Source: Trichosphaerium sp. ATCC 40318 (lineage: Eukaryota; Protista; Tubulinea). From it: a stretch of 64,000 bases of DNA. Both the position numbers and the translations under genes were made by a program. The stretch spans positions 1-64,000 of the forward strand of contig JALMLS010000536.1 in NCBI GenBank assembly GCA_038496445.1, written 5' to 3'. Numbering within the stretch: position 1 is the stretch's first letter; each line of letters starts with the position of its first letter. Below the pieces are notes generated by a model, which did not search any database, had not been told where the DNA came from, and was given only the letters and a program-made list of their open reading frames with translations. Shown piece after piece: positions 14,242-56,880 of this stretch.

Positions 14242-15420
14242 TTATTTGGAGTTCTTCTTCATAATAATTTCTCTCCCAGTCGTACAGTGTTTAAGACTTA
14301 TGAATTTAACACCAACCAAGTATTGTAATCCTTTATCTGTCACAGATGTACCATCAAGATAAATTGTATGTACTCCAGCGAGTGCCTTTAAAGTACTGTC
14401 ATCAACACAAGCAAAATCAGAAATATTTATGACTTTTACACCTGCCAATTGTTTTATCCCATCATTTGTTATAGAGGTACAACCAACCAAGTTAATGTGA
14501 TGTACACCAACTAAACATGATAGAGTATCATCTTTTAGTTGTGTACAACCATCAAGCCCTATACATGGTATACCTGCCAAAAGTTTCAACACATCATTTG
14601 ATATTTGAGTGCAGTTGTCAAGTTTAATTTTTTTAATCTTCTTTGTTGTTTGATTTCGTGTCAATAAATACTTTACTCCTTCATCAGTAATTTTCTTGCA
14701 GTCACAGAAGGATATGAAACTTGTGTTTGTTAGTGCTTTTACACTTTTATCAGTAATATTGCATCTGTCAAGCTTTATCTTGTGTACATTACCTGAGATG
14801 GCAATAACACCTTTGTCAGTAATTCTGAAGCAACTGGATACATCAATAGTGTGGACTCCAGAGAGTGCCGAAAGTCCTTTATCTGTTATATCCGTCCCTG
14901 TAATATCAACTGTGTGAATACCGCCAAGTTGTTGAAGCCAGTCATCTTTTACATACCCAAATGGTATCCTTAGTGTATGAATACCATGAAGTGATTTAAA
15001 ACTGCAACTACTTTTTTTTGTATGTAGTTTCAGAGAATGTACACCTGAAATATGTTCTAATATAGCTTCTGTTAACGAAATATAATCCCTTATATGGAGG
15101 TGACGGACACCAGAGATAGTTTTAAAGTCATCACCACTCATTGTAAAATTGCCACGAATAACTATTTTCGTATTTTTCAAAAGAGGACTTCCGTTTAGTT
15201 TGAATAGATCTTCTCTTGACTTGACAGTCACCCTTAAATACCCCAAATGCTCTAGAATGATTGTAGAAAACAGTTTACAAACAAACGTGGCAGATATACG
15301 GCATTTCTTGCCCAAAAATACCAGAATACAAAATATTATTTCTGTTGGCAGATAAACCAATTCTAATGGCCTACGCATATTGTCAGCACAATAAACAGGG
15401 TTTACGTTTAATTGAGCCAT
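14242..15420 (-). CDS. F-box + LRR protein, copy A (C-terminally truncated, chimeric tail)
   Basis: LVYLPTEIIFCILVFL (F-box) followed by GVHTIxLxxCxxITDxG repeats; near-identical to 42230-43367. Confidence 0.85.
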   Translation of the reverse strand: MAQLNVNPVYCADNMRRPLELVYLPTEIIFCILVFLGKKCRISATFVCKLFSTIILEHLGYLRVTVKSREDLFKLNGSPLLKNTKIVIRGNFTMSGDDFKTISGVRHLHIRDYISLTEAILEHISGVHSLKLHTKKSSCSFKSLHGIHTLRIPFGYVKDDWLQQLGGIHTVDITGTDITDKGLSALSGVHTIDVSSCFRITDKGVIAISGNVHKIKLDRCNITDKSVKALTNTSFISFCDCKKITDEGVKYLLTRNQTTKKIKKIKLDNCTQISNDVLKLLAGIPCIGLDGCTQLKDDTLSCLVGVHHINLVGCTSITNDGIKQLAGVKVINISDFACVDDSTLKALAGVHTIYLDGTSVTDKGLQYLVGVKFISLKHCTTGREIIMKKNSK

Positions 15421-15716
15421 AAACGGCCTAATTAATGTGTGAGAACATACTCTGAAGAACTAAGCATCGTTTAATCTCGCAAATGTTGTTCAAGCAATGG
15501 CAGAATAATATTGTAAACACGTGAAAAAAAACTGCCTTAATTTCACAATCAAGTAAAAATAGACTTGCGTTCAATGTAACTGCTTTACTTATTGGTTAAA
15601 CACTGAAAATACAGGTGGTATTAAGGGAATTATGTAGGGGTTTTGAATTATTTTGGAACGAAACAGAGACAATTATCTTTCGAAAAAAAAGGCTAAAAAC
15701 ACTCGGGATAATTTTC

Positions 15717-16661
15717 CTAGTATGAATAGCCCTTAGTGCCATTCCTTCGCCCCATGGATGGTCGTCTTTCCAGGCATTCCATTCATGGTCTTTCTTAAGT
15801 TGGTCTTCATCTTCATCAGAACCAAGCTCCTCAAGCCTTTTCTTCTCTTTTTCTTCACTAAGAAACATTAATAACAACATTTACTCCTAAAACACGCCAA
15901 GAAATAAGGGCTTTACAAAGCAATTTGAGGCATGCAATCTTTTTATTTCTGTTTTTCCAAAAAAGTTGACATTCTTGCGTACCTCTAATATCTTGGTTGG
16001 AAGCCTCCAGTGAGCATTAAATATGTCTTGTGCTTGAGCATGTGAATCAATTTTAAATGTTTTGAATGGTGGCTAATAAAAGAGAGTTAAGCACGTGGCC
16101 AAGTAAACACAAAAGAAGTATACCGCTTTGTGATTTGGTTCGGATTTAGGTAATGGCTTTTCTTCCTTGATTCTCAGACACATAAACTCTAAAATCTCAA
16201 CAAACTCATCAAGGGCTTTACCAATAGCAATCTAAATAGTCATTAAGAAGGCTTGTAAACGAAAAAAAAAAGACAACTTTTGGAGGTTATAAAATACCTC
16301 GATCAGTGTCTTGGCTTGTTGACGTTCAAGTTCTTCATCATCGTAGCCTTCGTCTTGGCCCTTACGCGAACGTTTAACCTTTAATGTCAAGATATCCTAG
16401 TGATGAGTATTAGTGATGAAGCTGTTAAGAGAAGGTTTATTTAAAGCTTACTCTCAGAAGCTTTTCTGCTTTCTTTTCTCGGTTTGCTCTTTCTATTTTT
16501 TCATTACGACGCTCTTCTGCTGTTTCTTTGCCCTCTCGCTCGAATGTGGCAATATCCTAGAAGCCGTTTTATTAGCTGTGAACGATTACTGCCTGTCAAC
16601 TGCTTTTTTGTTTATTGGTCATCGCAAAATGCATAATGATAAGACTTGGACGTACCTGCTT
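15717..16661 (-). pseudogene. Partial TAP42/alpha4 duplicate (3' exons only, with deletions)
   Basis: Matches 40877-41931 (..WNAWKDDHPWGEG); lacks the 5' exons and about 100 bp around 41620-41720. Confidence 0.85.
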
Positions 16662-17358
16662 TTACCATTAAGAACCGTATACTTTGTCATGAGTTGTCCA
16701 TTCTCATACCACCTTTTTCTCCATTCTTTATGTACTCTTGACAACGAACTTTCCCATTGTGGTACCATCCTATCCATTTTCCTTTTTTGCTTAGGTTTAC
16801 ATCAAAATGTGTTTATAGCTGCTCTTTTCGATAGTGTATGGAATTTAGTGAATGCTTCAGCGTTGAAAGTACAAAGATACTTTTGAATTTCACAAGGGAG
16901 ATCAAGTACACTTAAAGAAGACATCTAAACTGACACGTGGTTGTATGATAAAACAGTTAAGGTGTGGTAGCCTGCTTGTACTTGGCTTTAAAGGTGGCTA
17001 AATAAAGATTGTTACTAGGGTGTAAACTATGATATGTGGTTATCCTGCAAGTTAAACAATGTGGTCAAAATGTCTCCTAATTTTGTTTTCTGGTAAAAGC
17101 AACGCAATGTTTAACTTGAAGGATACAAAAATACGAGAAATATTATAAAGAGCACAGTGTTGCCGAAATTAGTTGAAGAAAACAAATTAGAGCTCGTGGG
17201 CGTAAAGACCATACCTTTAATTCAAATCGTCGTTTTACAATATGGCGTAGTGAGTTGCTCGTTCAAGCGACCTATAAAGGAATTTTGTTAAGTACCAGTT
17301 TGGGCCATTAAGCGACCTGTGAAAATTCGTTTCTGGACTCATAACATTTTAGCAGCTG

Positions 17359-18851
17359 ATGGACGCTAATAACGAAACGTACCATGAAAGAACAAAAGTG
17401 AAGGCTGTAATTTAACTAACGAAATTAGTAAAATCTCTGATAATGGTGGTCTTCTTCACTTGCCCGTGGAGATACTAGCCTACTCCTTATCGTACTTAAC
17501 AGGACGTTTTAATATTTCCATGACATGTTGGAAGTTATTTAATACTATTCAAAATCACGTGGGTTACAACAGGGTTTTTATCAGATCGTCAAATGATTGT
17601 ATCCGTATTTCTAAAAGTCCTCTTCTTCTTAACACTCAAATTGATTTAACACGGTTTGATAACCTTTTAGATGAAGATCTTATTACTCTAAAAGGCGCAA
17701 AATACGTATCCACAGGATACAGTCCAAAAATTACTGACCGAGGGTTACAGGCGCTAGCTGGAGTCAAACAACTTTACCTAGATCTATGTAAAAACATTAC
17801 TGATGAAGGTCTTAAAGCTATTGCTGGCGTTAAACGTGTAGCTATCAGCGAATGCTATGGTATAACAAGCGAGGGCATCAAGGCATTGGCTGGAGCTCAC
17901 TGGGTGAATTTAGACGGTCTTCCTTCAGTGAATGATGAAGCTCTAAAGTCGTTGGTTGGTGTTCATTTTTTAAGTGTTAATAAGTGTGATAATATATCTG
18001 ATTCAGGTATTTCCTGTCTTGTGGGTGTACACACAATACGTGTAAATAATACAAACATTACAGATAATGGTGTAATACCACTAACACATTCAGAAAAGCC
18101 TATCCACGAAATATGCCTGGCACATTCTTCTATTACTGATAAATCACTTCACGCTCTTTCTGGTGTTCACACCATAAATCTATCGTATTGCACTAAAATT
18201 ACAGATAATGGTATTAGAGCTTTATCAGGTGTTCATACTATTAACTTGATAAATACGAGGGTGAGTGACAATGGTCTTGAGGCGCTTGGTGGAGTTTACT
18301 GTATAAGATTAGAAAACAATGATTTGGTTACTGATAAAGGCATCAAGTTCCTCAAGGGTGTCCATACTATCTCATTGTGTAATATTTCCGTAACTGATGA
18401 AGGTATAAAGTATCTTGGAAGTGCTCCTACAGGTTGTAAAAAACTGAAAGGCGTTCATACTATTCACCTTTCTGAAACTAAAGTAACAGATGAAGGCATT
18501 AAAGCGCTTGCTGGTGTTCACACTATCCACCTTATTCGCACCTCAGTTACAGATGAAGGTATAAAACAACTAGGAAACAGTGTTAGGTCAATTTTGTTAT
18601 ATAATATCAACGTCACTGATGAAGGATTGAGAGAACTTAAGTGTGTTGAGCAAGCTTTGCTATATGAATGTGGAAATATTACAAATGAAGGAGTTAAAAG
18701 TATGGTATCGGTAAAGTACTTGGTAGTTTATAATTGTAGTAAAGTTACTGACGAATGTCTTTCACCTCTTACTCAATTAACTAGTGCATCATTGAATAGT
18801 GTTTCATATACAAAACAAGAGCTTGATCAATTGCGATTAAACTCTTTATAG
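17359..18851 (+). CDS. F-box + LRR protein (divergent paralog, one short 5' intron)
   Basis: ATG at 17359 and intron about 17379-17428 give MDANNETKISDNGGLLHLPVEILAYSLSYL (F-box), followed by many GVHTIxLxxTxVTDEGIKAL repeats in a single exon. Confidence 0.9.
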
Positions 18852-19129
18852 ACCAAATGCACTTTGTAACAGTCGACTGACCATTGTCTTAGACATTAAC
18901 AGAAACGTAAAAACAAAGCCAGAAAAAAACAGGAAACCAATAAAAATTAAGGCCTTAAACACAAACTGTACACAAGTTCTGATACTGGTTTAGTGCACAA
19001 ATATAGATGAGAACTAGACCTTTCCAGTTTACATGAATATAAGTCAACTAAATGGATTTCTCTGTAGTAAACACAAACTATTGCAAAACCAGCACCTTTT
19101 CACATTTTTTTCTCCTTGTGTCACATTCT

Positions 19130-20420
19130 AATACTTGTTCTCCTGCGAAAACATCCAAGTATCACATGTACAGTACATGGAGTAAAAAATACCTAGAAAC
19201 CGTTATGCAAAAGAGGTTCTGATTTCTTTGAAGGTAGTGAACGTAAATACAGTGGACAAAACAAGGCGTTACAAGATGATTGTATTACAGAGTTACAATC
19301 AAAAGTTATTGGTCAGGTGTGAAACCATACCATTCAGTGCATTGTATTCCTTTTACACAAAGAGATTTCGTAATTAAGTAATCATATTCGCTTCCACCAC
19401 AAACACGATTAAAAGATTCAGCTCGGAAGCCAATTGTTGGTTTCCCAAGAGTGAGTCTTGCGCGTCTCTGTGGATGACGTAAAAGGTGCTTAATATCCGC
19501 ACATTTATCTATATCATCTACTAACGCATTGATGCGCTTAACCCAGATATTAAAGCCACCATGGAACCTACCCAACTGTAAGAAAAAACAAACAACTGTG
19601 ACCGTAAGAAAAAAACTTTTCGTTTGTACCCTGGAACTGGACACCACATCACAACATCTGGATTTCCAAAGCACGTGACACATTTCAGTTGAGGTCTAAG
19701 AACAATATTTTGTAGAACCGTCTCTGGTAGTTCTTCTGTCATAGCTTCATTCAATTTATCTGTAAGTGCTTTCATTTCTGCTTCATCAGCAAAACAGATC
19801 TTTGGATCTCCGTAGCATCTCGGTTTCAACAGCACTAACAAGTCTTTGTGACCGTTTAACTTAGCAACATCATACGCAGTGTTTCCATTGGCATCTATAT
19901 AAACTTAGCGCTGGCACGAAGCAGAAAAAAACAAAGAAAGGAGGAGCATACCTGTGTACCATGTCATTTGAGGAACAATCAATAAAATCTTCTTTAAAAC
20001 ATCACGTGGTGAACCTTTTCTTGCAATAACGTGCAAAAAGCTCTCCATTGGACAAATCTCAGGGTCAGTACTGAACATACCGAATACTGAAGCCTCTGGA
20101 ATGTACTCCCCAATTTCGAACGTTTTCTCCCAATTTCCTTCTTCGGCATTTGTAAACGCTTTATCGAGCAAATCTTTAGCCTCTGAGTTTATACACATAT
20201 CGTCGCACCAATATACTCTTTTTATTGATTGTGCAGCCGGTTTAAGCTCTTTCCGTAAGAATAACCAATCAGATGATACAGTTTTCAACGCTGAGGTGTT
20301 TGATAGCCATGATAACGTTTTTGAAACGCATAAAAGGGTAGGATAGGACTCTGATGCTTCGTTACTAATTATATAAGCTATAATTTCTCTGGGCAGTTCT
20401 AGGAGGTATGGAGTTGCCAT
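19130..20420 (-). CDS. F-box + ankyrin-repeat protein with Cys-rich C-terminal region (3' end approximate)
   Basis: MATPYLLELPREIIAYII (F-box-like); ESFLHVIARKG and DANGNTAYDVAKLNGHKDLLVLL (ankyrin); CVTC..WCPVPG. Confidence 0.65.
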
Positions 20421-21060
20421 TTCTGTGCGTTTTGTCGTAGCAGTCAAGTCCGAGTGCTGACTTAACACAAGATTTGCGGCTGAATTTCGCAGAAATTTTG
20501 CAGCGTATTCCTTTGAGAACTACCTCGTTGATTGTTTTGAGTGAGAATTTTCTAGTATGATAAACACATTGTATATACGTTCTAGGAGTATGTTACAACA
20601 ATCACCTCGTGTAATTGCAGAAAATTCTTCTTGAACGTGATAACATTCGCCTCCTTGATCAGCTATTTTGTGCAGCTAAACACAAACAAACAACTAAGAC
20701 CACGTTTTCCATCAAGTTGCCTACTATAGTGCAGATGGTTTCTAAGCTGGACAATATGACTGTAGCTCAGATATCAGAGCATATCCTAATTGAGGCGGGT
20801 GTTTAACACGGGCCAGTTTTTCATAGTGGTTGTAGGTCACTAACAAAACGAATGTTCGAGTTGGATCTCATGTCCAATAGAAAAAAATTATGACATGAGA
20901 AAATGTTCCTCACTTTGACGTTTTGCTGCAACTAAAAAACCAAGTATATAATATGGCCTAATAACGCCCAAATAGAAAAATGTTTGGGAATGGCACATAC
21001 ACCAAGCAAGCCATTTCGAAATAAAGTTCAAGTAGTTTTTAGGGTAAAGAAAGCCTTTAT

Positions 21061-25330: not shown

Positions 25331-25562
25331 GAGCTAGAGCATTCAAAAAAGAATTCGTGTTTTTTTGCGCTTGTAGATTTCGTCGTGATTGTACTTTTCG
25401 TTTTGAAAGCACAAAGAGCGTCGTTGTTAACCCTAGACAGACGTGTCAAGCTGCTTTGTATTAAGTCCGCTTTAAAAAACCGCTAACCACTCGCGACACT
25501 TCATAAAAAAGGCTGGTTTTGCGTCAAAAGATGCGCGAAGTTACTTTCTTATTCAGTGTTCG

Positions 25563-31188: not shown

Positions 31189-31351
31189 ACCCAATTACGT
31201 TATGGTAAATATTACAGCACTGTGGAAACACTAGTTACAACCTCCAATGGGTTAAACAACAACTAGACAAAGTTGTACAAGTCAAGAAATGTACGCAAAA
31301 CGCGGAAACTAGTTTTAACGTTAATTCAAAGCTCTGCCTCGCGGAATTAGT

Positions 31352-40392: not shown

Positions 40393-41931
40393 ATGGCAGA
40401 GAAACCATATGGAGATTCAATCGTTGAGGTGTTCGCACGCGGGCAGAAAATTGCTCTGCAGCTTGAAAAAACAACATTAGAGCCACAGAGCCAAGAATAT
40501 AAGGATCTTGTAGCTGAGGGTGTAGCTATGTTAAAGCGCGCCTTACAACTTATTGACTCTGAAAGTATTTTCTCAAAGAACGAGGAGATGGCTGATGTAC
40601 CTACCAACTCGTTGAAGTACGTTCTATTGCCGACTGAACGTCATTTTTGATTTTTTTATTGCTTGTGGCCATGTCCTTTATTAACTCGCGATTAGATACT
40701 TGTTGGTGCCTTTTTATCTTGGTAGAGTGTACTTGAAACCATTTTCGGCACCAGAACGTTACGACGCAGTCACCAATGCTAAAGTACTAACGGGTGTATA
40801 AAATAATGCTTATAAATTGTTCTAGCTTCTCCTCAATAATTTTTTACAAAACTGTGTAAACCTTGGCGTTATGACCAAGCAGGTACGTCCAAGTCTTATC
40901 ATTATGCATTTTGCGATGACCAATAAACAAAAAAGCAGTTGACAGGCAGTAATCGTTCACAGCTAATAAAACGGCTTCTAGGATATTGCCACATTCGAGC
41001 GAGAGGGCAAAGAAACAGCAGAAGAGCGTCGTAATGAAAAAATAGAAAGAGCAAACCGAGAAAAGAAAGCAGAAAAGCTTCTGAGAGTAAGCTTTAAATA
41101 AACCTTCTCTTAACAGCTTCATCACTAATACTCATCACTAGGATATCTTGACATTAAAGGTTAAACGTTCGCGTAAGGGCCAAGATGAAGGTGACGATGA
41201 TGAAGAACTTGAACGTCAACAAGCCAAGACACTGATCGAGGTATAATTTTTTTCACTCGTGACCAAAAGTTGTCTTTTTTTTTCCGTTTGGCAAGTCTTC
41301 TTAATGACTATTTAGATTGCTATTGGTAAAGCCCTTGATGAGTTTGTTGTTATACAACAAGAACTTGAGATTTTAGAGTTTATGCGTCTGAGAATCAAGG
41401 AAGGAAAGCCATTACCTAAATCCGAACCAAATCACAAAGCGGTATACTTCTTTTGTGTTTACTTGGACACCTGCTTAACTCTCTTTTATTAGCCACCATT
41501 CAAAACATTTAAAATTGATTCACGTGCTCAAGCACAAGATATATTCAATGCTCACTGGAGGCTTCCAACCAAGACATTAGAGGTACGCAAGAATTTCAAC
41601 TTTTTGGAAATAAAAAGATTGCTGCAAATACAACTGTTATTGACTACAATACTAGGAGCTTGCTGAAGAGGAAATCGCTGATATGAGACGTAGAGAAGCT
41701 AAGGATAAAATAGCGTATGTTTGCTTTGTAAAGCCCTTATTTCTTGGCGTGTTGTAGGAGTAAATGTTGTTGTTAATGTTTCTTAGTGAAGAAAAAGAGA
41801 AAAAAAGGCTTGAGGAGCTTGGTTCTGATGAAGATGAAGACCAACTTAAGAAAGACCGTGAATGGGATGCCTGGAAAGACGACCATCCATGGGGCGAAGG
41901 AAATACTGGCACTAAGGGCTATTCATACTAG
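40393..41931 (+). CDS. TAP42: TAP42/alpha4 (IGBP1) PP2A regulatory subunit
   Basis: IFSKNEEMADVPTNSLKYLLVPFYLG, DDEELER, LPTKTLEELAEEE, DREWDAWKDDHPWGEGN. Confidence 0.9.
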
Positions 41932-42184
41932 GAAATTATCCCGAGTGTTTTTAGCCTTTTTTTTCGAAAGATAATTGTCTCTGTTTCGTTCCAAAATAAT
42001 TCAAAACCCCTACATAATTCCCTTAATACCACCTGTATTTTCAGTGTTTAACCAATAATTAAAGCAGTTACATTGAACGCAAGTCTATTTTTACTTGATT
42101 GTTAATTAAGGCAGACAGTTTTTTTTTTCACGTGTTTACAATATTATTCTGCCATTGCTTGAACAACATTTGCGAGATTAAACG

Positions 42185-43573
42185 ATGCTTAGTTCTTCAG
42201 AGTATGTTCTTACATTAATTAGGCCGTTTATGGCTCAATTAAACGTAAACCCTGTTTATTGTGCTGACAATATGCGTAGGCCATTAGAATTGGTTTATCT
42301 GCCAACAGAAATAATATTTTGTATTCTGGTATTTTTGGGCAAGAAATGCCGTATATCTGCCACGTTTGTTTGTAAACTGTTTTCTACAATCATCCTAGAG
42401 CATTTGGGGTATTTAAAGCTGACTGTCAAGTCAAGAGAAGATCTATTCAAACTAAACGGAAGTCCTCTTTTGAAAAATACGAAAATAGTTATTCGTGGCA
42501 ATTTTACAATGAGTGATGATGACTTTAAAACTATCTCTGGTGTCCGTCACCTCCATATAAGGGATTATATTTCGTTAACAGAAGCTATGTTAGAACATAT
42601 TTCAGGCGTACATTCTCTGAAACTACATACAAAAGAAAGTAGTTGCAGTTTTAAATCACTTCATGGTATTCATACACTAAGGATACCATTTGGGTATGTA
42701 GAAGATGACTGGCTTCAACAACTTGGCGGTATTCACACAGTTGATATTACAGGGACGGATATAACAGATAAAGGACTTTCGGCACTCTCTGGAGTCCACA
42801 CTATCGATGTATCCAGTTGCTTCAGAATTACTGACAAAGGTGTTATTGCCATCTCAGGTAATGTACACAAGATAAAGCTTGGCAGATGCAATATTACTGA
42901 TAAAAGTGTAAAAGCACTAACAAACACAAGTTTCATATCCTTCCGTGACTGCAAGAAAATTACTGATGAAGGAGTAAAGTATTTATTGACACGAAATCAA
43001 ACAACAAAGAAGATTAAAAAAATTAAACTTGACGGCTGCACTCAAATATCAAATGATGTGTTGAAACTTTTGGCAGGTATACCGTGTATAGGGCTTGGTG
43101 GTTGTACACAACTAAAAGATGATACTCTATCATGTTTAGTTGGTGTACATCACATTGACTTGGTTGGTTGTACCTCTATAACAAATGATGGGATAAAACA
43201 ATTGGCAGGTGTAAAAGTCATTGATATTTCATGGCTTAATTGTGTTGATGACAGTACTTTAAAGGCACTCGCTGGAGTACATACAATTTTGCTTGATAAT
43301 ACACCTGTGACAGATAAAGGATTACAATACTTGGTTGGTGTTAAATTCATAAGTCTTAGACACTGTAGGCACATAAGTGACAAAGGAGTGAACAGTCTTA
43401 TTGGTGTTAAGAAACTTCATCTCGAAGGCTGCGCACAAATCACAAATGATGGTATTGTTAATTTAACAAGCCTTGATCAAATTGCGATTGATGCTACTCA
43501 AATAACAAAGGAAATGATAGACGTTCTAGGATGCCAAATTCCCACCATGCTACACTTTTGGCCTGATTTTTAA
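42185..43573 (+). CDS. F-box + LRR protein, copy B (full length)
   Basis: 462-aa open frame; F-box LVYLPTEIIFCILVFL followed by AMN1/RNI-like LRRs. Confidence 0.9.
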   Translation: MLSSSEYVLTLIRPFMAQLNVNPVYCADNMRRPLELVYLPTEIIFCILVFLGKKCRISATFVCKLFSTIILEHLGYLKLTVKSREDLFKLNGSPLLKNTKIVIRGNFTMSDDDFKTISGVRHLHIRDYISLTEAMLEHISGVHSLKLHTKESSCSFKSLHGIHTLRIPFGYVEDDWLQQLGGIHTVDITGTDITDKGLSALSGVHTIDVSSCFRITDKGVIAISGNVHKIKLGRCNITDKSVKALTNTSFISFRDCKKITDEGVKYLLTRNQTTKKIKKIKLDGCTQISNDVLKLLAGIPCIGLGGCTQLKDDTLSCLVGVHHIDLVGCTSITNDGIKQLAGVKVIDISWLNCVDDSTLKALAGVHTILLDNTPVTDKGLQYLVGVKFISLRHCRHISDKGVNSLIGVKKLHLEGCAQITNDGIVNLTSLDQIAIDATQITKEMIDVLGCQIPTMLHFWPDF

Positions 43574-43798
43574 CTAGTCAACAGCACAAAGGCAGGTATA
43601 CAATCTATTGCCATTGTTCATCACCAAGCCATCGTGTAAACAAGTACTCAATAAAGGTAGACAAATTAAGCAGATATACATGTCGAGTCTGACCGTGGAC
43701 TGTAATGTACTTTCCATTACAAGTTTTTCTAGCCAAAACCCTTTTTCTTGAATACAAAACTGTACTGGAAACCTAACGTGTTTTGAATTTATATCCTT

Positions 43799-45652
43799 AT
43801 GCTAGCAACACGTGCATTTCTCGGAGTGCGTTTTATAATGTATATAAATGGATTTACAAGCGTAGGTCGTTATAATTGTAATAAGTTCATCCGCTTTCGC
43901 TCAGGAGTCCCGAAAGAGTACTTTTAGGGCACTGATGGATGTAAACTTCCCTGGTATTGATAAAAACACAGGCGTAAAGAAAAGCTATCAGGGTAATTTG
44001 TAACGGAACAATTTCGTTTTTTTTTTGTTTTGAGTTAACTCGGGCTGTTAGGGTACTTGTTGTACGACTGGGAGAGAAATTATTATGAAGAAGAACTCCA
44101 AATAAATTCAGGACATGGAGTTGAAGAATTTGTACAAGTTATAGATTACGATAAGGTACTTGAAGCGTATGGAGTGAACGACAAGTCGTTTTTTTTTTGT
44201 GTTACGGAAGTTTTGTTTTTGGGTTGTTTTGAATTTTTACACGTGATTTATCGTTACTAATCACGTGATAAGCGCGAAAGACAGACGTATTGGAATAATT
44301 CATGTTCATTTACGAATGTTCTTTCCCAGACACTTCTTCCAGTTGCTATGCCTCATTTGCCTATTTTTTTTACACCGTTTAATGATACGGATCATATTCA
44401 GCCTATAAATAATACAATTTCTGATCAACAAGCCGAATGGTGGTTCAAAAATGGCGACACAATGACGAGACTTATAGTAGGATTACCTGATAATGAGGTA
44501 CTTATAATTAACCTAATAAATGGGGAAGAAGAGTAACTGATTCGAAGTGTATTAGATGATAACTGCTGATGTTTTTGTTGCAAATACTTTAGTTCGTACA
44601 ATGAAATTCGTTTGGTTTTATGACGAGGCAGAGTTCTTCCATAAGAATATAACAGAGGACGAGTGTATTCCTGAGCGCGAATGTGAATCGAACTGTATGG
44701 GATTATGCTTATCAGGAAGCTGCACGTAAGTTGATTTCTTCAACAGCCATTTTTCTTTATGTTTACAAAAACGCTATTAGATGTGTCGGTAATAGAATAC
44801 CTCCGCTTTGTACTATTCCTCCTACAGATGCGCCATATTCAACAACAGAACCACCTACTAGAAGGTAAAAATGTTAAGTACATAGTATTGACTAACGTAA
44901 CTTTTACAGTCCACCTTCTGAAGCTGCTACTGAAGAACCTGAAGGAGTGCGCATACAAAATTGTTTTTCATGTCTTCGTTCTTCTCATTGCTTATCCGTG
45001 GTAGCTTATTCTGGGCGCTCTTACCTATGGCATCATAATAATGTTTTGTTTCCTTGGCTTAGGCGTATGCGTCATTGTAATAAGTACGACTGGGTTTTTT
45101 TTGTAAACCTTGTTTGTTGACTAGCTATTCTAATTGGTTATCTCCAGTCATTTGCGTGATTGTTGTAAAAGAAGCAACACCTGAAGTATTTGAACAAGTA
45201 GGTGAGGTATTAAACCAATCAAGTAGTGGTGATGACTATGAATCCGATGAAGGATTACTTTATGGTACAAGAGGAGTTTTACTGTCAAAGAACAAACTCA
45301 CGTGTTTTGTAACGTTGCTCATGTTTTTGTTTTTTTTTAGGTCCTAGAGATCAAGAGTTACCTACTGGACAGGAAAAAGATGATGGTGTTGATTTATTTG
45401 ACTCTGGTATGGAATCTAGAGGCAGCGGTTGGTTTAACGCCCTAAGGCATCAAATGATAAATGACAGGGTAAGAGTTTATTGCAGCTGTTTTTAGTTTAT
45501 TTCTGATTATGGTCTTGTAGAGGCGTACTGGAACTAGTAGTATGGTTGAGCTTGATACTCTTGGTTCAATATCAGGAAGTCAAAGTACAATTGGCGCTGG
45601 AGATACATTTGTACCTCTCAGAGAAAGACAAAATACTCTTGACTTGTTGTAA
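43799..45652 (+). CDS. Type I membrane glycoprotein (signal peptide, ependymin-like beta region, Cys-rich segment, TM, acidic tail)
   Basis: MLATRAFLGVVIIVISSSAFA; YQGYLLYDWERN; CIPERECESNCMGLCLSGSC; TM YGIIIMFCFLGLGVCVIV. The ependymin resemblance is weak. Confidence 0.6.
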
Positions 45653-45815
45653 AATAGTAAACCTTGTTATGTACTTTCTGTATTTTTTAATTAGTACTAT
45701 GAAGGTCTATCAAATAGCACACGTATAAAACCACAAGCCTTTGATTACTATCACAAGCGTCTTACCATCTTTGTTGAGTTATACATCAATGTGAGCTCTT
45801 GTTCAGCTTTCTAGT

Positions 45816-45871
45816 TATACCTGCCAACAGTTTCAACACGTCATTTGATAGTTGAGTGCAGCCATCAAGTT
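45816..45871 (-). repeat. Orphan single-LRR DNA cassette from the A-D family
   Basis: Reverse complement AACTTGATGGCTGCACTCAACTATCAAATGACGTGTTGAAACTGTTGGCAGGTATA is nearly identical to 43026-43081 (LDGCTQ-SNDVLKLLAGI); the flanks are unrelated. Confidence 0.85.
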
Positions 45872-46273
45872 CGCTTTGAGACCGTAAAACAAGCATGCGC
45901 ATGATATTGCAAAACTTATTGGTGTAGCATATCTTTTGTATGAAGCAATGTGGATGATGTGAACAAGTTGGAAGCTTGCTTAAATCTGTAGTGTATTGAC
46001 TCATTTAAATAACAGCTCTTAGCAATACTTAACGGCTGTACTGGCTTTCCACGCTGTGTACTAATAATTACATCGAAAAAAATCACCATCCCAGCTTGCC
46101 CGATCAGGCTCCTCTAGATCGTTTTGGTTAGTCAGGTGGGCTAAACTACTTAAATGTACTAAAACTATTTTCGTAACATCACGTGTACCATTTATTTTCT
46201 TGTAACCGGACAAGATTAGTCAATTAAGTTAAAAGCCTTACGCTAATAGACATGCCTGAGATTACAAAGGAGC

Positions 46274-47744
46274 ATGGATCACAATCTAATACATGTACCA
46301 GAGTACGTTATACCTTTGTTCTCTTATAAATCGCTAAATATACCATTAAATCATTGTGTTGGCTAATTTGGTGTTTTAAAGACCATTAGAGTTACTTTGT
46401 TTACCAACAGAAATTCTATTTTGTATTCTGGCTCTATTGGGTAAACGTTGCCGTATATCCGCCACATTTGTTTGTAAATTGTTTTCTACAATCATTTTAA
46501 ATCATTTGGGGTACAAACAGATCAAAGTCAGGTCAAGGAAAAATCTTCAAACGCTGACCAAAAGTCCTCTGTTAAAAAACACAAAAATTGTGATTTACAA
46601 TCGTTTACTTAAGATGACTGTTGATGACTTTAATTGCCTATCTGGTGTCCATCACTTAAAAATACAAGAGAAGACCTTATTAACAGATGCTATGTTAAAC
46701 AACATTTCAGGTGTACATAACCTTGTACTACGTATACGTGATGATGCACATAAGCTCGAAATACATAATAATGGACTTAAGTCACTATGTGGTATTCATA
46801 CATTGGACATATCATACGGGTATTTAAAAGATGAATGGCTTCAAGACCTTGGCAAAATACATACAATAAATGTTTCTGGGACTGATATAACAGACAATGG
46901 ATTGGTAATGCTTTCTGGAGTCCACACTATTAATTTATTCAATTGCTCCAAAATTACTGACAAAGGTGTTATTGCCATTTCACGTGATGTCCATAAAATA
47001 CAGCTTTCTTATTGTGATATTACTGATAAAAGTTTAAAAGCACTAACAAATGCAAGTTTCATATCTTTTAATGACTGCAAGAAAATTACTGATGAAGGAG
47101 TAAAGTATTTATTGACACGAAATCAAACAACAAAGACAATTAAAAAAATTAAACTTGATTTCTGCACTCAAATATCAAACGATACACTAAAGCTGTTGGC
47201 AGGTATACCATGTATAGAGATGTATGGTTGTACACAACTAAAAGATGATACTCTATCATGTTTAGTTGGTGTACGTCACATTAACTTGGGTATGTGTAAA
47301 TCAGGTGTACACCATATTTACTTGGGTATGTGCAAATCTTTAACAAATGATGGGATAAAACAATTGGCAGGTGTAAAAGTCATTGATATTTCTGATTTTG
47401 CTTGTGTTGATGACAGTACTTTAAAGGCACTCGCTGGAGTACATACAATTTATCTTGATAATACATCTGTGACAGATAAAGGATTACAATACTTGGTTGG
47501 TGTTAAAGTCATAAGTCTTAGACGTTGTAGGTACATAAGTGACAAAGGAGTGAACAGTCTTATTGGTGTTAAGAGAATTAACCTAAGAGGGTGCTCACAA
47601 ATCACAAATGATGGTATTGTTAATTTAAAGGGCCTTCATCAAATTGAACATATTGACACCCAAATAACAGAAAAGATGGTTCAAAATCTAGTAGAGGAAG
47701 TAGAAACATGGGGCTTCTGGCCAAGTTTTTTTGAAAGTTATTAA
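46274..47744 (+). CDS. F-box + LRR protein, copy C (full length, one 5' intron)
   Basis: ATG 46274 and intron about 46303-46381 give MDHNLIHVPEPLELLCLPTEILFCILALL (F-box) followed by LRRs; the 3' half is near-identical to copies A, B and D. Confidence 0.9.
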
Positions 47745-48088
47745 TAAAGTTATGCTTTGGACTACATTTCGAAATTTGGCAAGATTCACTAGTTGCTAAG
47801 AAACTCCACTTTTAAACGCCCTTGAGTACCATTTCAAAAAAAGCTTATTTGTAGTCTAACCAATTTCGAATATCAAAAGTACTGTACTTAACTCAGCCTA
47901 TACCTTTATACATTAGAAGATTCTTAGGCTAACCTACTTGCCGTTTATCTATATTACACAACCGCAGTATCGGTTAAGATTCTGTTATCGGAATTCTTTA
48001 CAATCTGTGTTCCACGCTTTTCAAAAAAAAGTCAATTTTCATACTATTATTTACACATTCTGAGCTGTTACACGTTTTATAAAACGAT

Positions 48089-48873: not shown

Positions 48874-49124
48874 GCAAATACTCCTCAAAGCCTACCTTCT
48901 TCTGTACAGATAAATTAAAAAAAATAAACCAGTTATCCGATAACATAATCGTGTGTACAAATACTTGATGAGCAATATTTTTTGGTGTTGTATAATGTTG
49001 TATTGCTAACGGTAAATATGGTAGAAGTAAAGTGAAGTATGCGATGTGACAAGCACAGGTGAGGAAATTACGGATGAAAGAGTGAGGTTTTATTAAACGC
49101 ATACAAGATCGCAGTACAGCGCTT

Positions 49125-50381
49125 TTATTTTCCCCAGGTGATAGTTGCATTGCGGTTTTTAACATCAACCCAAACAGTAGTACCTGAAGCAAATGAACGA
49201 GTGTAAATGTAACCATTTTTAGTGGCATCACTCTTTGGTTCTCCAAGTTTGTTGTCATATTCCTTGTGCCATGATAGACCAGTAAGGCTCCAAGGGAACC
49301 GTTTATCTTGGTATGAAAAGTATGATAGCTCTCCCATTGAAACGAGGTATGTCGCTAGTCCGAACTCAAAGTCATCCTGAGTCAATCCAATGACGTGAAT
49401 TTGTGTCAGTTGCTTTCTGTGAAACAAAGAATGAGTACAAGGTTTTTTTTTTGGTTTTAACTTACCTTTTAGTGTTACCTTGCGCTGCTGTAATGTCCAT
49501 CACACATTGGTCTGGGTCATATTTTGTTTCATCTCCGTATTCACTGCAGAAGGTATCCGTTAACATCATTGCATTTGCATTCTTCCAATCTTCTGGCACA
49601 ATAGCTGCTGTTTCCTTTGCCAAAATAATATGGTCCTCAGTTACGTTCCCTTGAAGCTCTTTGAAGAGCGCTTCGCCGCCTTCAGCAACTTTAAGGAACA
49701 TATCTCTAGTCCACCCTTTGGCGCCCTTATTTAGGTTGTACATTTCTCTGGCCCAGTCGCCTCTATCAAAGAAACAACCATCAAAGCTCTTCAAAAAAAC
49801 CAAAATAAGCTTCAAAAAAAATATCACGTGATAAGTCAAGGATAAACTTACGCTTTTAATTCCTTCCATGCAATCTTTAATAATAAGGTCGCGCATCTCG
49901 GGGTTACTTAAATCAAAGGCTGTCATGCCGGCTAAATGAGGAAAAGGAGCGAAGCTTCCGTTAGGGTACGAAACAAGTAAATCAGTACGTCCAAGCGTCT
50001 TGTTGTACAAAGAAAACTCTGGGAAGTTTATAGCAGAATTGTAGTACCTAAAAATAGTAAGAAAAAAACCCGTTGACGCAAGAGAACGTACATAAGCGTA
50101 AATACTTTTGGATTTGTGTTTTTAATTTGCTTAGAAGCTTCGATGAATCGCTCCTCCTGTGTTAGCGGTAAACGTCTCCCTTGTTTTTTATCAAACTGCA
50201 CAATTTGAAACTTTGTCAAAAAATCAAGCTCTGTTTCGTTATATGGTGTCGTTTTGGTCACGTGAGCAAAGACAGGTATTGTTTCGAATGAAAACATTGG
50301 TGGTTTTTGCACTGCAGGGTATCCTACCGTGTAGGTAATCGATAATATAACCACAAGTACGAAAATGAATACTGGTGACAT
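49125..50381 (-). CDS. Secreted putative glycoside hydrolase (GHL15/GH168-like TIM barrel)
   Basis: Signal peptide; PMFSFETIPVFAH..IVQFDKKQG..EERFIEASKQIKNTNPKV, FDLSNPEMRD, FDGCFFDR, WHKEYDNKLGEPKSDATKNGYIYTRSFASGTTVWVD. Confidence 0.75.
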
Positions 50382-51104
50382 CAGGAAAGCGGCCTACAAT
50401 TTCTTACGAACAGTTGTTTGACATTTCGTTTAAGTGCGTGTGAATCGCAATTGTTTCAAGCCACAGAATACCAGGAGTTATAGGTGGCTGTGGTACGGTA
50501 CCGTATGAGTCGGCTACAAAACCTGTAGCCTGTTAACCGACGGCTAAGAAAATCAGCAACAAAAACTGTAATCGGTTAACCGTTTTAAAAAGGTGAGATT
50601 TTGTTGGTGTTGTACCAATGCACCACATGCTTTTTTAAGGTTCTACGCGCTCTCACTGGCTTTGTAGTTCGTTTGCGTTCGATACGTAGGTCCAAAAGCC
50701 TCGTATCAAGCAAAAAAGCAGAAATGGTTTGAGGTTTTCCCGTATTGTTATAAGCCACTACCGGAGTAGAATAATCTTTCGTGTTATTATGACATAACAG
50801 ATAGGAAAACTACTCCTTCTCATGCAACCAAATAACTGTCTAAACTGTATTACATATACTTCTCAAACACAAAGGCTATACATCCTTCAAAAGGCTTCAT
50901 GTACCTCAAGTCGCCTGATGCTTTCTTCTAGTCCGAAGATTATTGCGCTAAACGCTTTTGCGCTAGTCTCCTATACATTGTGTCCCTCTCAGAGACGCAA
51001 CACTAACTAATACGATGTGTTCAGCATAAAACTGTATTCGTTGAATAAGCTTTGACTTGTAATCAGTTGTTTACCACACTTCCCAAATCAAACGTTCTTG
51101 CCTA

Positions 51105-52162
51105 ATGATGGCTGAATCGAATAGAAACACAATAAATCCATTAATATCAGACGATGAGAGTTCAAGCGGTACACTTTAGCCCAAACAGACTTTTAAATAC
51201 CCTTTTTGTTTATGATGTATGCTCTAACTCTGTAATACTAACAATACGTTGTAAACGTCAGATTTTGAACTGGAGGATTGGTCTTGGCCTAATAACACTC
51301 AAGATATGATGGAGTACATAGAAGCGGAAGCGTCTTTGTTTAGTAATACTGGTCCACCGAGTGGTGATTCGATAATTGACGAGAACGCAATTCTAGAACT
51401 GGATGAAGACCCTGTAGCTGGTAGAAAGCGAAGGGGACGTACTGCAGATAGAACGACGGAACAATTTCTTGAATACAACCCAAGGCGCTTACATATTGCT
51501 ACAACCAACCCCGAGGTATGGCACGTGCGTAAAAAAGGAAAATTACGGAAGCACGTGAAATGTAACTTAAAAAAATCGCTTGGCTGATCTTTCGTTGGTG
51601 TTAACGGTTTTAGGTTACTAGATTAGGTGGAGAGTTAACAGGGATATCAATACCAAGGACAATACTAAAGAAACATCCTAACAAGTTTACAGTACGCGTT
51701 AGCATAGGAGATATTCATCAGGACACTAAATTTTCTTTAAGGTTTATGTTATAGAAATATCTAGAGTTAACTCTGATAATAACTACATCATAGAACGTCG
51801 CTATAAACAGTTTTTGCACTTCTACCAGGAGGTACTCAAACAAATTTAGTCCGATAGTCACTTGTATACTTTTAGATCTCTAAACAGCCGATTTCTTTAC
51901 CTAAGTTCCCTGGTAAGAAAGTTACAAAACGTTTTTCAAAGGTATGTCGCTTATAAATGGTATTTATCACGTGACCATTTTTAGTCAACAATAGCGAAAA
52001 GACGGTATATTCTTGAATATTTTTTAAAGACAGTTGCTACCTATGAACCGCTTACTGGAGCATTAGAGTCATTCCTAAATCCACGAAGAGGTTCTGTTTT
52101 CTAACAAACCTTTTTAATCTTACGCTTTTATTTCAGGTCACACGTCCTTTATACCATATTAG
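51105..52162 (+). CDS. PX (phox homology) domain protein
   Basis: KFTVYVIEI..YIIERRYKQFLHFYQEI..LPKFPGKK..TIAKRRYILEYFLK..LESFL; stop TAG at 52160-52162. Confidence 0.85.
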
Positions 52163-52467
52163 TCCTTAGTATGTATATCCCTTATTTTTATAAGCAACTT
52201 GTACACTTAAATAGACGCATGTAGCAATCGTCAACGATGTAAAAACTAAAAACAACAGATTTTTTGAAAAATGTTCAACAACAAATAGAAGCTATAGCCA
52301 GCGAGTTCAGGTTTGACATCGAGGGCTATTGAACATACTGGTTTTATCCTTGGTTTTAGTATTCATTGTACAAATGTATTAGGCACTGATTCGCGAAAAT
52401 AGTTTCAGAAAACTCGCAAAATTATGCTAAGCAAGTCAAGTACTTATTGATCTGTGTACCATCGTAA

Positions 52468-55400
52468 ATGTCAGACAAGAGAGCATATCTCACCTTGACA
52501 GATTTATCTGTCGATGGCGTAGATAATGACGATGATATCATCGTTCGTGAATTGCCTGGAGCAGATATTGGCATACAAGCTCCAGAGGGGAGTAATGTTC
52601 GTCGTAGGAACTTCAAAAGGCGACATTCGACTGGTTCAGGGGTAGTAGGCGCAAATGGAGGCACAAACGATATTACGCATAGTGTAGACCCTGTAGACAA
52701 AAAGAAAGACGAGTTAAATTACATGTTTGGTGTAGCGAAATGGGGTCAGCCTTTGACGCGAAGAAATGACATCAAAGAGGATTCAGACTTTGTTATGGTT
52801 GAAGGAGGGCAAAAGAAACAAGGTAAGCGAAGTTACAAAGGAAAATTCCGCAAACTTGTTGATATGTCACAAAACAATAATAATACGTTGAAAATACGCG
52901 TCAGAAGACATTTAAAACAAATTGGAAATTTCTTTTCGCTAAAACTCTACAATAACGTAAAAATATCAAAATAACCAATACGACTGCTTAGCAAGATGTA
53001 ATCCGTACTGTAACGTTGGTAATATTACGTGGGTGATATTTTTCGGATGGTGGCTTTCTCTATTGTATTTAATTCAAGGTACTAGCGGTAAACGCATGTA
53101 TACACAACAAACAAGGTGTTTAGGCGTTTTCATGATGATGACAGTTATCGGTCTTCCTTACGCGTTTACTGCTTGGAAAACCGCCTTCTACATACTATGG
53201 CCGTTTGGAAAGTATCTAGTCAAAACGGTACGTGCGAGTTTACCCGCAAAAAGCGCAAATGTTCGCGAAATTGTTTTTTTTTTAGCGCCTGACTTTTTGT
53301 TTGTACTTGAAGACTACAGAAGATTACGAGCATGTATCGTTACTTCCTCGTAAGCGTATGGAAAATAGTAGCGTATTTACGAGACGATTTACGTTAGGTA
53401 TTTGGTGGGTATTGTACAGTACGTAGTGATTAATAGAGCAGTTTGAGCTCTTGAAGATTTTTTTTTAGAGTTTTTGTTGGAAAATATCACGTGATTTGTC
53501 AAGACAATTTGTAGTTGATTTCTGATCTTTTTAGGTATAATCCTAGCGCCTGCACACCTTTTCGTAGCGTTTGTAAGCTTTTTTTTCGTAGTAACTATTC
53601 CGATGGCAAAGGTACAAACCATCAGTTTTTTATTTCCGACAACTAAATTGTATTCTTAGGTTAACAAAGAGCTTCTTGTCCTTATGTACACGAAACCTCT
53701 AGAAATACATATTACACCTAATTACCCTGGCGCTGGTGCACATGTAGAGCTATGTACTCACCAGGTATCTAATTTCTTTTCAAAACCGGAAAAAAAAGTT
53801 TCTCGCTTTTTTGCGATTTCTGTGATTGGATTTTTAGTCTTATGTTTGTTAATTAGGCTGTCAATCTACATTATTACCGTTACACTTTCGGTGGGGTAAA
53901 TATAATCCTAGTCAGTATCCTAACCGAATAATTTTATATTGGATTACAGTTCTTATCATTCTCCTTAACTTTGTTAAGATATGCTTTTATTTGTAGTCTT
54001 CGCTATTATTGAAGGATGGATTATACCTGAGAAGCATCGACTTGCACCTATTGTAATGTTCGTCATCGATTTACTTTGTATTATACCATTAGCGTTCTAC
54101 ATTGGCATGGGCGTCTCATCGTACGACTTCAGTTTTAGAAACCAATTTAACGAAGTATCACAAGGATTGCAGCACAGAGTAACTATGTAGTGGGTGCTGT
54201 AATGACAGCTAGTTTTAGTAGTATAATAGATTTGATTCTATACTTCAGTGCAATAAAGAAACATGGTGGTGAATTAGCTGACGTTGTTCAAGCTTCAATA
54301 ACAGGTACCTTTGTTTCTTTCTTTTGGTTTCTAGAAATCGACTTACTTTGGCTTTACAGGTTCATTATTGGGTATGTTGCTATTGCTCCCTGGATTATCT
54401 ATGATTGCTGGAAGTATTAAGAGCTTGAATCAACGGTTCAACCCTATTGCAGCTGGCGTTGGATCTGTGCTTCTTATTGTTTCAATTATTGGTAAGTTAT
54501 CTTTTGGGTTTTTTTTTAAATCCATTTGTTTTTTTCCTTACACAATCTGTTTAGGTGCTTTTACACCGACTATATATTACTCTGTTTATGGTACATGGGC
54601 AATACATTGTAATAATTGCACTACTTTACTTACGAATCATACAAACGAAATGTCATGTATAGGTACATAGCACTTTTATTTTTTTTATTGCGTGACTTTC
54701 TTTTGCCTTTGTAAAGCTTTATGCGCCTTTTTCAGTATCTCTTATTACTTTTATAGGATGCATGTATAATCAGTCGCGTTTTGATGAAGACCCTGCATAT
54801 ACTAAAGGCGCTAGGTATGTTGAAGAGTGAAAAATTGCTTCACAAAAGTGACATGATCACGGCTATTCTTTCAATCGTATTTTTTTTTGTTGCACAACTT
54901 TTGTCTTAATGTTGTGTATAGACCTTTGATGTACATAAGCGCCGGGGTACTACCTATCATGTATATTGTTGGATTACTTTTCACATTCAAGACACATGCC
55001 AAGGAGTACTTGTTGGTACGAGACGATGAAGAAGATGGTTCGTTTACTTTTTTATTGAAAAATCTTCGTCTTTATTTAACCGTTTAAAAGAGCATGGTGG
55101 TCACCATGGACCACAATGGAATCGTATAACAAGCGTGATTGTCCTTATTGTAGCAACAGGTACATCAAAACACATGGTGGTTGTATGTGCCTAACGGTTT
55201 TTTTCTTCAAAAGGCCTCTTTGCATTGATTGCTGAGAACCTTGTTGATGCAATCAAACCAACTATTGATGCTCTTGGTATTACACAACAGTTTCTTGGAA
55301 TAACAATTATCGGTATTGTACCGAGTTTCGCTGAGTTCGTAAATGCTATTACTTTTGCCATGCAGGTAAAGAGGAAACATTAAAAAAAAAAGGTGTTTTT

Positions 55401-55909
55401 TTCTCACTTCTTCGTTCCCGTAGGATAACATAGCTCTTTCTTTGGAGATTGGTTCTTCTGCATCAGTACAAATTACATTGATTCAAGTACCCGCGCTTGT
55501 ATTCTTTTCAGCAATTGCAAACCACGGGTACACCATGTGATCTTTTTTTTTTTTGATGGTTTTGTTTTTGAACACTTTTGTTACGTTGACTTTTCTATGC
55601 TTGTGTTAACGCTTTTCTTCTAGTTCCTCCTTTCACTCCTTCACTCTAATTTTCCCCACGCTTAATGTCTTCGCTGTAATATTCGCAGTAATTATTCTTA
55701 ACTACATATCTGTAGATGGTACCACATGTTTCTCTTTTCCTTTTTTTTTTTATTTATTTACAAAATCATTTTGTTTGTAATTTACTTAATTTTTAATAGG
55801 TCGGTCCAACTACTTTCAGGGTTGTGGATTGGTTATGATGTATATAATCCTTGTTGCTGCTTTCTTTTTTGTACCAGACGCTGCTGAAACTGTAGCACCA
55901 GCACATTGA
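52468..55909 (+). CDS. Type II Ca2+/cation:H+ exchanger (CAX, Vnx1-like) with YccF/DUF307 domain
   Basis: GNITWVIFFGWW..TVIGLP..AFYILWPFGK (DUF307); alpha repeats GAVMTASFSSIIDLILY..GSLLGMLLLLPGLSM and PSFAEFVNAITFA..IALSLEIGSSASVQITLIQVP; NYFQG. Confidence 0.9.
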
Positions 55910-56088
55910 TAAATAGCCCAAAAAAAAAAAAGTAAATAAAAAAGTAAAAACTCACAAGCTTTTATTGCACCAATCGTAGGAACAAATTTTACCGTTAACA
56001 AGAAAAAAACTGGTACACGTGATGTACCATGACAACTTGTACGACCTATGCTGCCAAATTTCGAAATGTAGTCCAAAGCATAACTTTA

Positions 56089-56880
56089 TTAATAACTCTC
56101 AAAAAAACTTGGCCAGAAGTGCCTTGATTCTACTTCCTCTACTAGATTTTCAACCATCTCATCTGTTATTAGGGTCAAACTATATTTAATTTGATCAAGG
56201 CTTGTTAAATTAACAATACCATCATCTGTGATTTGTGAGCAGCCTTCGAGATGAAGTTTCTTAACACCAATAAGACTGTTCACTCCTTTGTCACTTATGT
56301 ACCTACAGTGTCTAAGACTTATGAATTTAACACCAACCAAGTATTGTAATCCTTTATCTGTCACAGATGTATTATCAAGCAAAATTGTATGTACTCCAGC
56401 GAGTGCCTTTAAAGTACTGTCATCAACACAAGCATATGAAATATTTATGACTTTTACACCTGCCAATTGTTTTATCCCATCATTTGTTAAAGAGATACAA
56501 CCAAGCAAGTTAATGTGACGTACCAACTAAACATGATAGAGTATCATCTCTTAGTTGTGTACAACCACACATCTCTATACATGGTATACCTGCCAACAGC
56601 TTTAGTGTATCGTTTGATATTTGAGTGCAGTACTCAAGATTAATTTTTTTAATCTTCTTTGTTGTTTGATTTTGTGTCAATAAATACTTTACTCCTTCAT
56701 CAGTAATTTTCTTGCAGTCATTAAAAGATATGAAACTTGCATTTGTTAGTGCTTTTACACTTTTATCAGTAATATTGCATCTGCCAAGCTTTATCTTGTG
56801 TACATTACCTGAAATAGCAATAACACCTTTGTCAGTAATTCTGGGGCAATTGAATAAATTAATAGTGTACTCCAGAAAGC
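56089..56880 (-). pseudogene. F-box-LRR family copy D: 5'-truncated, frameshifted LRR fragment
   Basis: No F-box or start codon; homology begins abruptly at about 56880; 2-nt deletions near 56870 and 56521; shares the FWPSFFESY end and 3' flank with copy C. Confidence 0.9.

Follow-up and report, generated by a model that had tools for sequence, protein, structure and literature searches.

Young F-box/leucine-rich repeat gene copies in Trichosphaerium vary on the predicted binding face, probably without a need for diversifying selection

The 64,000-nt stretch of DNA analysed here (positions 1 to 64,000 of contig JALMLS010000536.1 in the assembly GCA_038496445.1 of the marine amoeba Trichosphaerium sp. 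ATCC 40318; hereafter the window) carries several copies of a gene for an F-box protein with short leucine-rich repeats (LRRs). The copies share their scaffold DNA and vary on the predicted concave binding face of the protein, in or just after the beta-strands of the repeats. A preliminary description, made from the sequence alone, had read this pattern as a rapidly diversifying recognition system. We consider it probable (roughly 60%) that these are simply young copies of a lineage-expanded family, shaped by gene birth and death, short-tract conversion and relaxed constraint on the concave patches, with no need for diversifying selection. The features on which the argument draws are as follows.

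Copy A: 14242..15420, minus strand; truncated gene of 392 aa that is a recent duplicate of B, at about 2% neutral divergence.
Copy B: 42185..43573, plus strand; intact, intronless open reading frame (ORF) of 462 aa with an F-box and about 16 short LRRs of 20-23 residues (ORF and translation, Pfam, AlphaFold2).
Copy C, transcript: 46231..47755, plus strand; exon 1 46231-46302 (start codon 46274), intron 46303-46381, exon 2 46382-47744 (stop) (RNA contigs, spliced frame).
Copy D: 56089..56880, minus strand; pseudogene, mosaic of B-type and C-type sequence.
Copy E: 17460..18851, plus strand; distant fifth member, 31% identity to B, with the LPxEI... N-terminus of the family and LRR_6 repeats (tblastn, Pfam, family F-box hidden Markov model, HMM).
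Orphan fragment: 45816..45871, minus strand; 56 bp of a single repeat (ELDGCTQLSNDVLKLLAGI), with 93% identity to B 43026-43081.
Beta-strand patches with hypervariable codons, repeats 6-13 (B coordinates): 42881..43360, plus strand; the scaffolds between patches are identical in all four copies A to D.
Starts of variable codons, in B coordinates: 42881, 42944, 43034, 43097, 43157, 43163, 43223, 43232-43240, 43289, 43298, 43358.
Duplicated segment, B side: 40877..44156, plus strand; 3' part of the upstream gene, B, and, downstream, the initial exons of a membrane-protein gene (blastn).
Duplicated segment, A side: 14194..16661, minus strand; equals the B side minus a deletion and includes a degenerate 3' part of the upstream gene (blastn).

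According to the scenario that we favour, copies would arise by segmental duplication at the DNA level, A and B through a single 3.3-kb event, and would then decay through deletion and frameshift, as A and D have done. Ectopic gene conversion would swap tracts of tens of bases between them. Under purifying selection combined with conversion, the helix and scaffold parts would stay identical, and the concave beta-strand patches would be essentially unconstrained, with a ratio of nonsynonymous to synonymous divergence (omega, dN/dS) near 1. Such patches may either escape homogenisation or be swapped patch by patch, which would leave the paralogs different almost only there.

Four related genes lie at the coordinates given in the preliminary description, and tblastn with B as the query added two further pieces, E and the 56-bp orphan. 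The preliminary picture of the four also had to be corrected: A is truncated, D is a pseudogene and C possesses a 5' exon and a 79-nt intron. The true start of B is probably the second ATG, at 42230, which is the conserved one. D has neither the F-box nor the N-terminal repeats, everything upstream of repeat 5 being gone, and it is frameshifted, having lost 2 bp (within 56515-56535) and 3 bp (within 56427-56445). Since it lacks the 5' part and carries both deletions, D is a pseudogene.

RNA evidence comes from four small runs, represented as contigs only. Among the copies, C alone is seen in RNA: the span 46231-47755 is covered by contigs of run X1, which carry a template-switch oligo at the 5' end (46231) and join 46302 directly to 46382, so that the 79-nt GT..AG intron is missing. 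Over about 1.5 kb they differ from the genome by two mismatches and no gaps. No contig of B was found in the four runs, which, being small and available as contigs only, provide weak evidence of silence. The preliminary description had counted lack of expression against a working receptor family. In this respect C is expressed and spliced, B has no RNA contig in these runs, A is truncated and D is dead.

Two peculiarities of C were observed in passing. In its 5' exon (window 46252-46302, plus strand) an upstream ATG at 46252 precedes the start codon 46274 in a different frame; it opens an overlapping upstream ORF of 37 codons that crosses the splice junction. Farther downstream, at 47268-47339 (plus strand), one beta-strand patch is duplicated in tandem, as two imperfectly matching units of 36 bp (GVRHINLGMCKS / GVHHIYLGMCKS). 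The duplication adds half a repeat, disrupts the LRR period and is present in the mRNA contig; its halves differ at 7 of 36 nt, and about half of these differences are silent.

The family consists of F-box plus short-LRR proteins, and on this identity the preliminary description was right. For full-length proteins Pfam reports LRR_6 (E 1e-13 to 1e-17) and F-box hits below the cut-off. When the N-terminus of B is scanned alone, it reaches 24.6 bits for PF12937 (cut-off 24.3) and 22.3 bits for PF00646 (cut-off 20.5), and that of C reaches 28.0 and 28.1 bits for the same two models. The F-box of E is missed by Pfam's own model; a family-specific F-box HMM scores it at 82.8 bits. The AlphaFold2 model of B (mean predicted local distance difference test score, pLDDT, 85.8; 43-79 in the F-box region) is a regular solenoid with the repeat consensus xIxLxxCxxITDxGLxxLxGVx. 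Its best solved match is FBXL2 bound to SKP1 (6o60_C, phmmer E 2.6e-12, Z 29.4), in a superposition that covers only residues 88-437 of the B model and says nothing on the F-box. FBXL17 is also among the top PDB matches, and the second-best structural match is the LRR domain of Ralstonia RipG4 (9j7j, Z 26.4, root-mean-square deviation 2.5 over 324 residues). From this kinship we infer that the family members most likely serve as interchangeable substrate adaptors of SCF (Skp1-Cullin-F-box) ubiquitin ligases.

FBXL-type SCF receptors with cysteine-containing LRRs (human FBXL2/FBXL20, FBXL17 and Skp2) share with the Trichosphaerium proteins the N-terminal F-box followed by an LRR solenoid and the xLxLxxCxxITDxGL consensus. 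The LRR_6 or RNI-like C-terminal solenoid that characterises the FBXL subfamily is thus present, but the repeat unit is not: FBXL repeats are about 26 residues long, whereas those in the window have 20-23 and lack the second conserved cysteine. Overall identity is about 20%. In addition, FBXL genes are conserved single-copy orthologs, whereas here we see a lineage-expanded family with very young copies and pseudogenes.

Further paralogs and close relatives were found neither in the protein collection by word search (best identity 37%) nor in IMG/VR. An exact scaffold 23-mer had no match in the JGI metagenomes, and a protein-based scan of the same metagenomes returned relatives at 22-36% identity only. 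One metagenome contig, Ga0209624_10000001 (577 kb, 25% GC, densely coding), carries, close to one end, a tandem array of LRR_6 genes (278-475 aa) that are 27-34% identical to B and have no Pfam F-box hit; the contig looks like that of a giant virus or an intracellular bacterium.

How do the copies differ? The preliminary description had reported shared scaffolds interrupted by variation at the x positions of IxLxxC, and its motif table proved exact. In the order A/B/C/D the variants are FISF[C/R/N/N]DC, KI[KLDN/KLDG/KLDF/NLEY]C, CI[GLD/GLG/EMY/EMC]GC, HI[NLVG/DLVG/NLGM/NLLG]C, VI[NISDFA/DISWLN/DISDFA/NI--YA]C and TI[YLDG/LLDN/YLDN/LLDN]T. The scaffold stretches that it named are nucleotide-identical in the four copies except at B coordinate 42993, where D alone has a G>A change. 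Within 42880-43365, A and B differ nonsynonymously at 13 codons and synonymously at 3, which is one amino-acid change fewer than the approximate 14 of the earlier count and the same number of silent ones. Over the whole shared ORF (379 codons) there are 19 and 6, respectively.

These differences are far from evenly spread. Beta-strand patches make up 378 of 1137 nt and hold 20 of the 31 A-B nucleotide differences, with up to 7 differences packed into 12 nt (permutation p<=5e-5). With the concave set defined by the conventional xxLxLxx positions, nonsynonymous variation per site (pN) is 0.362 for concave x codons and 0.093 for convex x codons, which are equally non-consensus (p=1e-6), about a 4-fold difference; over the whole LRR region the values are 0.391 and 0.191 (p=1e-5). 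As the differences concentrate in patches, cluster, and favour concave x codons, the pattern is not due to chance. In the AlphaFold2 model of B, DSSP places strands at x1-L2-x3 of each 20-23-residue repeat (one repeat has 29), and from these strands and canonical LRR geometry the variable positions are predicted to be solvent-exposed. The variation therefore sits on the predicted concave face, where the preliminary description had put it. Because of where the differences lie, the copies very probably bind different substrates.

The history of A and B can be followed in some detail. They belong to one inverted duplication of an approximately 3.3-kb DNA segment that is now about 2% diverged. Homology takes in 1.3 kb of upstream flank, on which the 3' part of another gene lies, and also a downstream exon. 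Substitutions in the flank alignment amount to about 2%, in line with a dS of 0.025 for the ORF. Indels behave differently: there are 8-9 in about 1340 bp of flank versus none in the 1137-bp shared ORF, where simple arithmetic predicts about 7. This difference suggests that both reading frames have been kept open by selection. A has since lost 693 bp (B 43368-44060), with TGTA microhomology at the junction at about 14283-14286. The deletion removed repeats 13-15 and the C-terminus, and the last 13 codons of A are now an out-of-frame reading of an exon (44051-44149) of the neighbouring membrane-protein gene.

Other sequences travelled with the segment. The 3' part of an intron-containing gene, whose product ends in ...DREWDAWKDDHPWGEGNTGTKGYSY before the stop codon, is found at window 40877-41935 (plus strand) and 15700-16661 (minus strand) and was duplicated together with B. 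The A-side copy is a decaying fragment: an exon-bearing stretch (B 41640-41718) is missing from it, and 4 bp are deleted near the stop. On both sides (16661-16900 and below 14194, both minus strand) the A segment is flanked by a minus-strand reading of MORN-type repeats, for example GKWIGWYHNGKVRCQEYIKNGEK..., and at one edge of the segment homology to the B locus stops about 7 nt beyond an exon-intron boundary.

Short-tract exchange among paralogs is demonstrated within the family by four kinds of evidence. First, D switches between agreement with B and agreement with C every 10-100 bp or so, giving 27 runs instead of the 53.8 expected over 108 informative sites (p<=1e-5). Second, the four-copy alignment contains mutually incompatible site patterns: 25 group A with B and C with D, 3 group A with C and B with D, and 2 group A with D and B with C. 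Third, B-C identity swings along the gene from 61-72% in the N-terminal repeats to 93% in repeats 12-13 and down to 58% at the C-terminus. Fourth, A-B differences are clustered, as illustrated by TCTGATTTTGCT versus TCATGGCTTAAT, where a silent change is included, and several of them are multi-nucleotide replacements (GAT>TGG, GCT>AAT, TAT>TTG and GGT>AAT). Silent changes ride along with two A-B patches (ATA AAT versus ATT GAT, and TCT versus TCA), and three multi-nucleotide patches match states found in C or D. We infer that conversion is the mechanism behind individual patches as well. The orphan single-repeat piece of 56 bp, which lies in intergenic DNA, is similar in size to the conversion tracts in D.

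It is natural to ask whether the binding face is under positive selection. The interpretation in the preliminary description calls for elevated dN/dS at the concave sites, and such an elevation did not survive a local control: concave pN is 0.94-1.6 times the variation at synonymous sites of the same patches, taken as the x codons plus the interleaved core codons (p 0.14-0.8, not significant), as these synonymous sites have diverged too. In-patch synonymous diversity exceeds that of the scaffold both over the whole LRR region (0.41 versus 0.24, p=0.006) and in repeats 5-13 (0.29 versus 0.13, p=0.035), and 4 of the 6 silent A-B differences lie in patches. Within x codons omega is 0.8-1.0, and older comparisons with C give 0.5-0.85. 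For A-B it is 1.15 overall, 0.58 in the F-box part and 0.8 in the scaffold. Most of the A-B excess is carried by the four multi-nucleotide patch replacements. Once they are set aside as probable conversions, 5-6 A-B x-site changes remain against about 3.6 expected neutrally by our own arithmetic. Since the remaining changes are close to the neutral expectation, patch replacement rather than faster point substitution accounts for the excess. Recombination is known to inflate dN/dS tests, and four recombining sequences would not satisfy what site models (codeml M7/M8, MEME) assume.

Nonetheless, several observations weigh against our interpretation. At canonical concave positions A-B dN is 0.093 versus a dS of 0.025, about four times the neutral divergence of about 2% estimated from flanks and silent sites. 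Concave pN is also 1.85-2.2 times the synonymous variation when the latter is pooled over all codons (p 0.004-0.006). Single sites flanked by identical sequence hold four residues in four copies (N/G/F/Y and D/G/Y/C), and a neutral model must explain diverged islands on nearly every beta-strand patch and on only one helix segment. Finally, no donor was found within the window for B-specific or A-specific patches, among them the B-specific patch at 43229-43240 and the A-specific codon at B coordinate 43298-43300.

Such observations would be accounted for by true diversifying selection on the concave face. The copies would then form an adaptive repertoire of SCF receptors, possibly with giant-virus or intracellular-bacterial proteins as targets, and the part of conversion would be limited to supplying variation for selection to fix. 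The specificity of variation for concave x positions, the concave excess in both pN and A-B dN, the radical nature of the changes (up to four residues per site), the derived x-site changes in both the A and the B lineage and the indel-free state of both reading frames all point this way, and there is a precedent in nematode paralogous F-box genes (PMC8120010). However, this alternative has to contend with the missing excess over synonymous sites of the same patches, with the lower omega in older comparisons, with the near-neutral number of x-site changes outside the four replaced patches and with the effect of recombination on the tests themselves. In addition, damage affects two of the four copies, and B is unseen in RNA. 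We regard selection of this kind as possible but on balance unlikely. A still more specific proposal, namely a germline SCF receptor repertoire whose patches are renewed by conversion among paralogs and pseudogenes and retained by diversifying selection in a ubiquitin-based arms race with giant viruses, seems to us decidedly improbable.

The possible link with giant viruses deserves a closer look from another side. Matches in the viral structure library (BFVD) are stronger than those to solved structures: a 452-aa Tupanvirus F-box protein aligns over its full length (E 4.9e-27, template modelling score 0.74, 25% identity), and many LRR proteins of the Klosneuvirus group and of Pithovirus-like viruses follow. 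The F-box/LRR families of Tupanvirus, of Klosneuvirinae (Hyperionvirus, Catovirus, Harvfovirus) and of Pithovirus-like viruses have the same length and architecture as the copies in the window, are 25-30% identical to them, and are multicopy as well. The F-box expansion in Trichosphaerium and its connection with giant viruses have been published (PMC10521059).

It could thus be argued that the copies are recently integrated giant-virus genes, that is, viral cargo for manipulating host proteins. The best structural relatives are indeed same-length viral proteins (Tupanvirus, Hyperionvirus, Pithovirus-like, Catovirus), F-box and MORN are the commonest domains among putative viral transfers in Trichosphaerium (PMC10521059), and introns are absent from A, from B and from the main exon of C. 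On the other hand, C is transcribed and contains a spliceosomal GT..AG intron, and the copies reside in a cellular genome among intron-rich expressed genes, such as the one at 43777-45700 with its 10 short introns. Long ORFs are few in the window itself, whose GC content is about 36%, and it is eukaryotic, because RNA contigs reveal many short GT..AG introns in it. This GC content fits the 37.7% published for the Trichosphaerium genome, for which an abundance of F-box and MORN genes is also reported (PMC10521059). The GC content of the copies equals that of the surrounding genome. Viral proteins are only 25-30% identical, and IMG/VR holds no close relative. The locus does not look like viral DNA, whether free or integrated, and we consider recent viral integration very unlikely.

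About equally slim are the chances that the mosaic is an assembly or polishing artefact in which multi-mapped short reads produced a chimeric consensus among near-identical paralogs. The published assembly does mix Nanopore, PacBio and Illumina data (PMC10521059), and mosaic tracts of 10-100 bp are comparable to read fragments in size. Yet independent RNA contigs confirm C over about 1.5 kb, including its odd 36-bp duplication, with those two mismatches and no gaps, and the A-B differences are codon-structured and lie within unique flanks. Programmed or somatic diversification resembling that of lamprey variable lymphocyte receptors (VLRs) or immunoglobulin gene conversion, with silent donor cassettes such as D, is the least credible option: short replacements centred on beta-strand codons, the raised level of silent changes there and the existence of the silent mosaic D and the 56-bp orphan repeat would suit it, but the evidence consists of copies fixed in one assembly, the one C RNA contig equals the genome except for two letters, donors of unique patches were not found in the window, neither a recombination-signal-like feature nor an associated enzyme gene is present, and ordinary meiotic or mitotic ectopic conversion suffices.

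Comparison with other diversified LRR and F-box families helps to place our preferred interpretation, that is, birth and death of young copies with conversion and relaxed concave patches. In plant resistance-gene LRR clusters and in lamprey VLRs, variation falls on the strand positions of xxLxLxx and paralogs are mosaic through short-tract exchange. Both the hypervariable concave strand positions and the mosaic paralogs recur in Trichosphaerium. However, there is no NB-ARC or signalling domain and no sign of somatic assembly here, and the products are predicted to be intracellular ubiquitin-ligase adaptors rather than signalling receptors. The GALA-LRR F-box effectors of Ralstonia, to which RipG4 belongs, likewise combine an F-box with short cysteine-type LRRs, but they are injected bacterial effectors with 24-residue GALA repeats, and the copies in the window have no secretion context.

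Expanded, fast-evolving F-box families in nematodes and in plants (Thomas 2006, summarised in PMC8120010) provide a further evolutionary parallel. They too have grown by tandem or segmental duplication and combine a conserved F-box with a substrate domain that varies; a role in immunity has been suggested for them. Among paralogous F-box genes of nematodes, positive selection on the substrate domain is seen, and a link between SCF components and antimicrobial responses has been described (PMC8120010). Those families, in contrast, mostly have FTH, FBA or kelch domains, and selection in them was detected from many paralogs or from population data. Diversification of F-box families in the substrate domain, possibly for defence, is already established for nematodes and plants (PMC8120010).

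If the binding-face variation in Trichosphaerium were adaptive, it would represent a protist case of expanded ubiquitin-ligase adaptors acting as an innate recognition repertoire, and such a case would be of added interest since giant viruses carry the same protein family. The main value of the window is methodological. Its young duplicate pair, for which the flanks supply a neutral calibration and in-patch synonymous sites a local control, is a clean illustration of how short-tract conversion on a conserved repeat scaffold can produce what looks like site-specific positive selection in LRR genes.

As for the surroundings of the copies, the gene directly downstream of B (43777-45700, plus strand) has at least 11 exons separated by 10 very short GT..AG introns (40-117 nt), and spliced contigs of it are present in all four RNA runs. 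This neighbour was considered as a MORN gene, an assignment that we rejected: in the spliced frame its product is a cysteine-rich single-pass membrane protein with one clear transmembrane segment.

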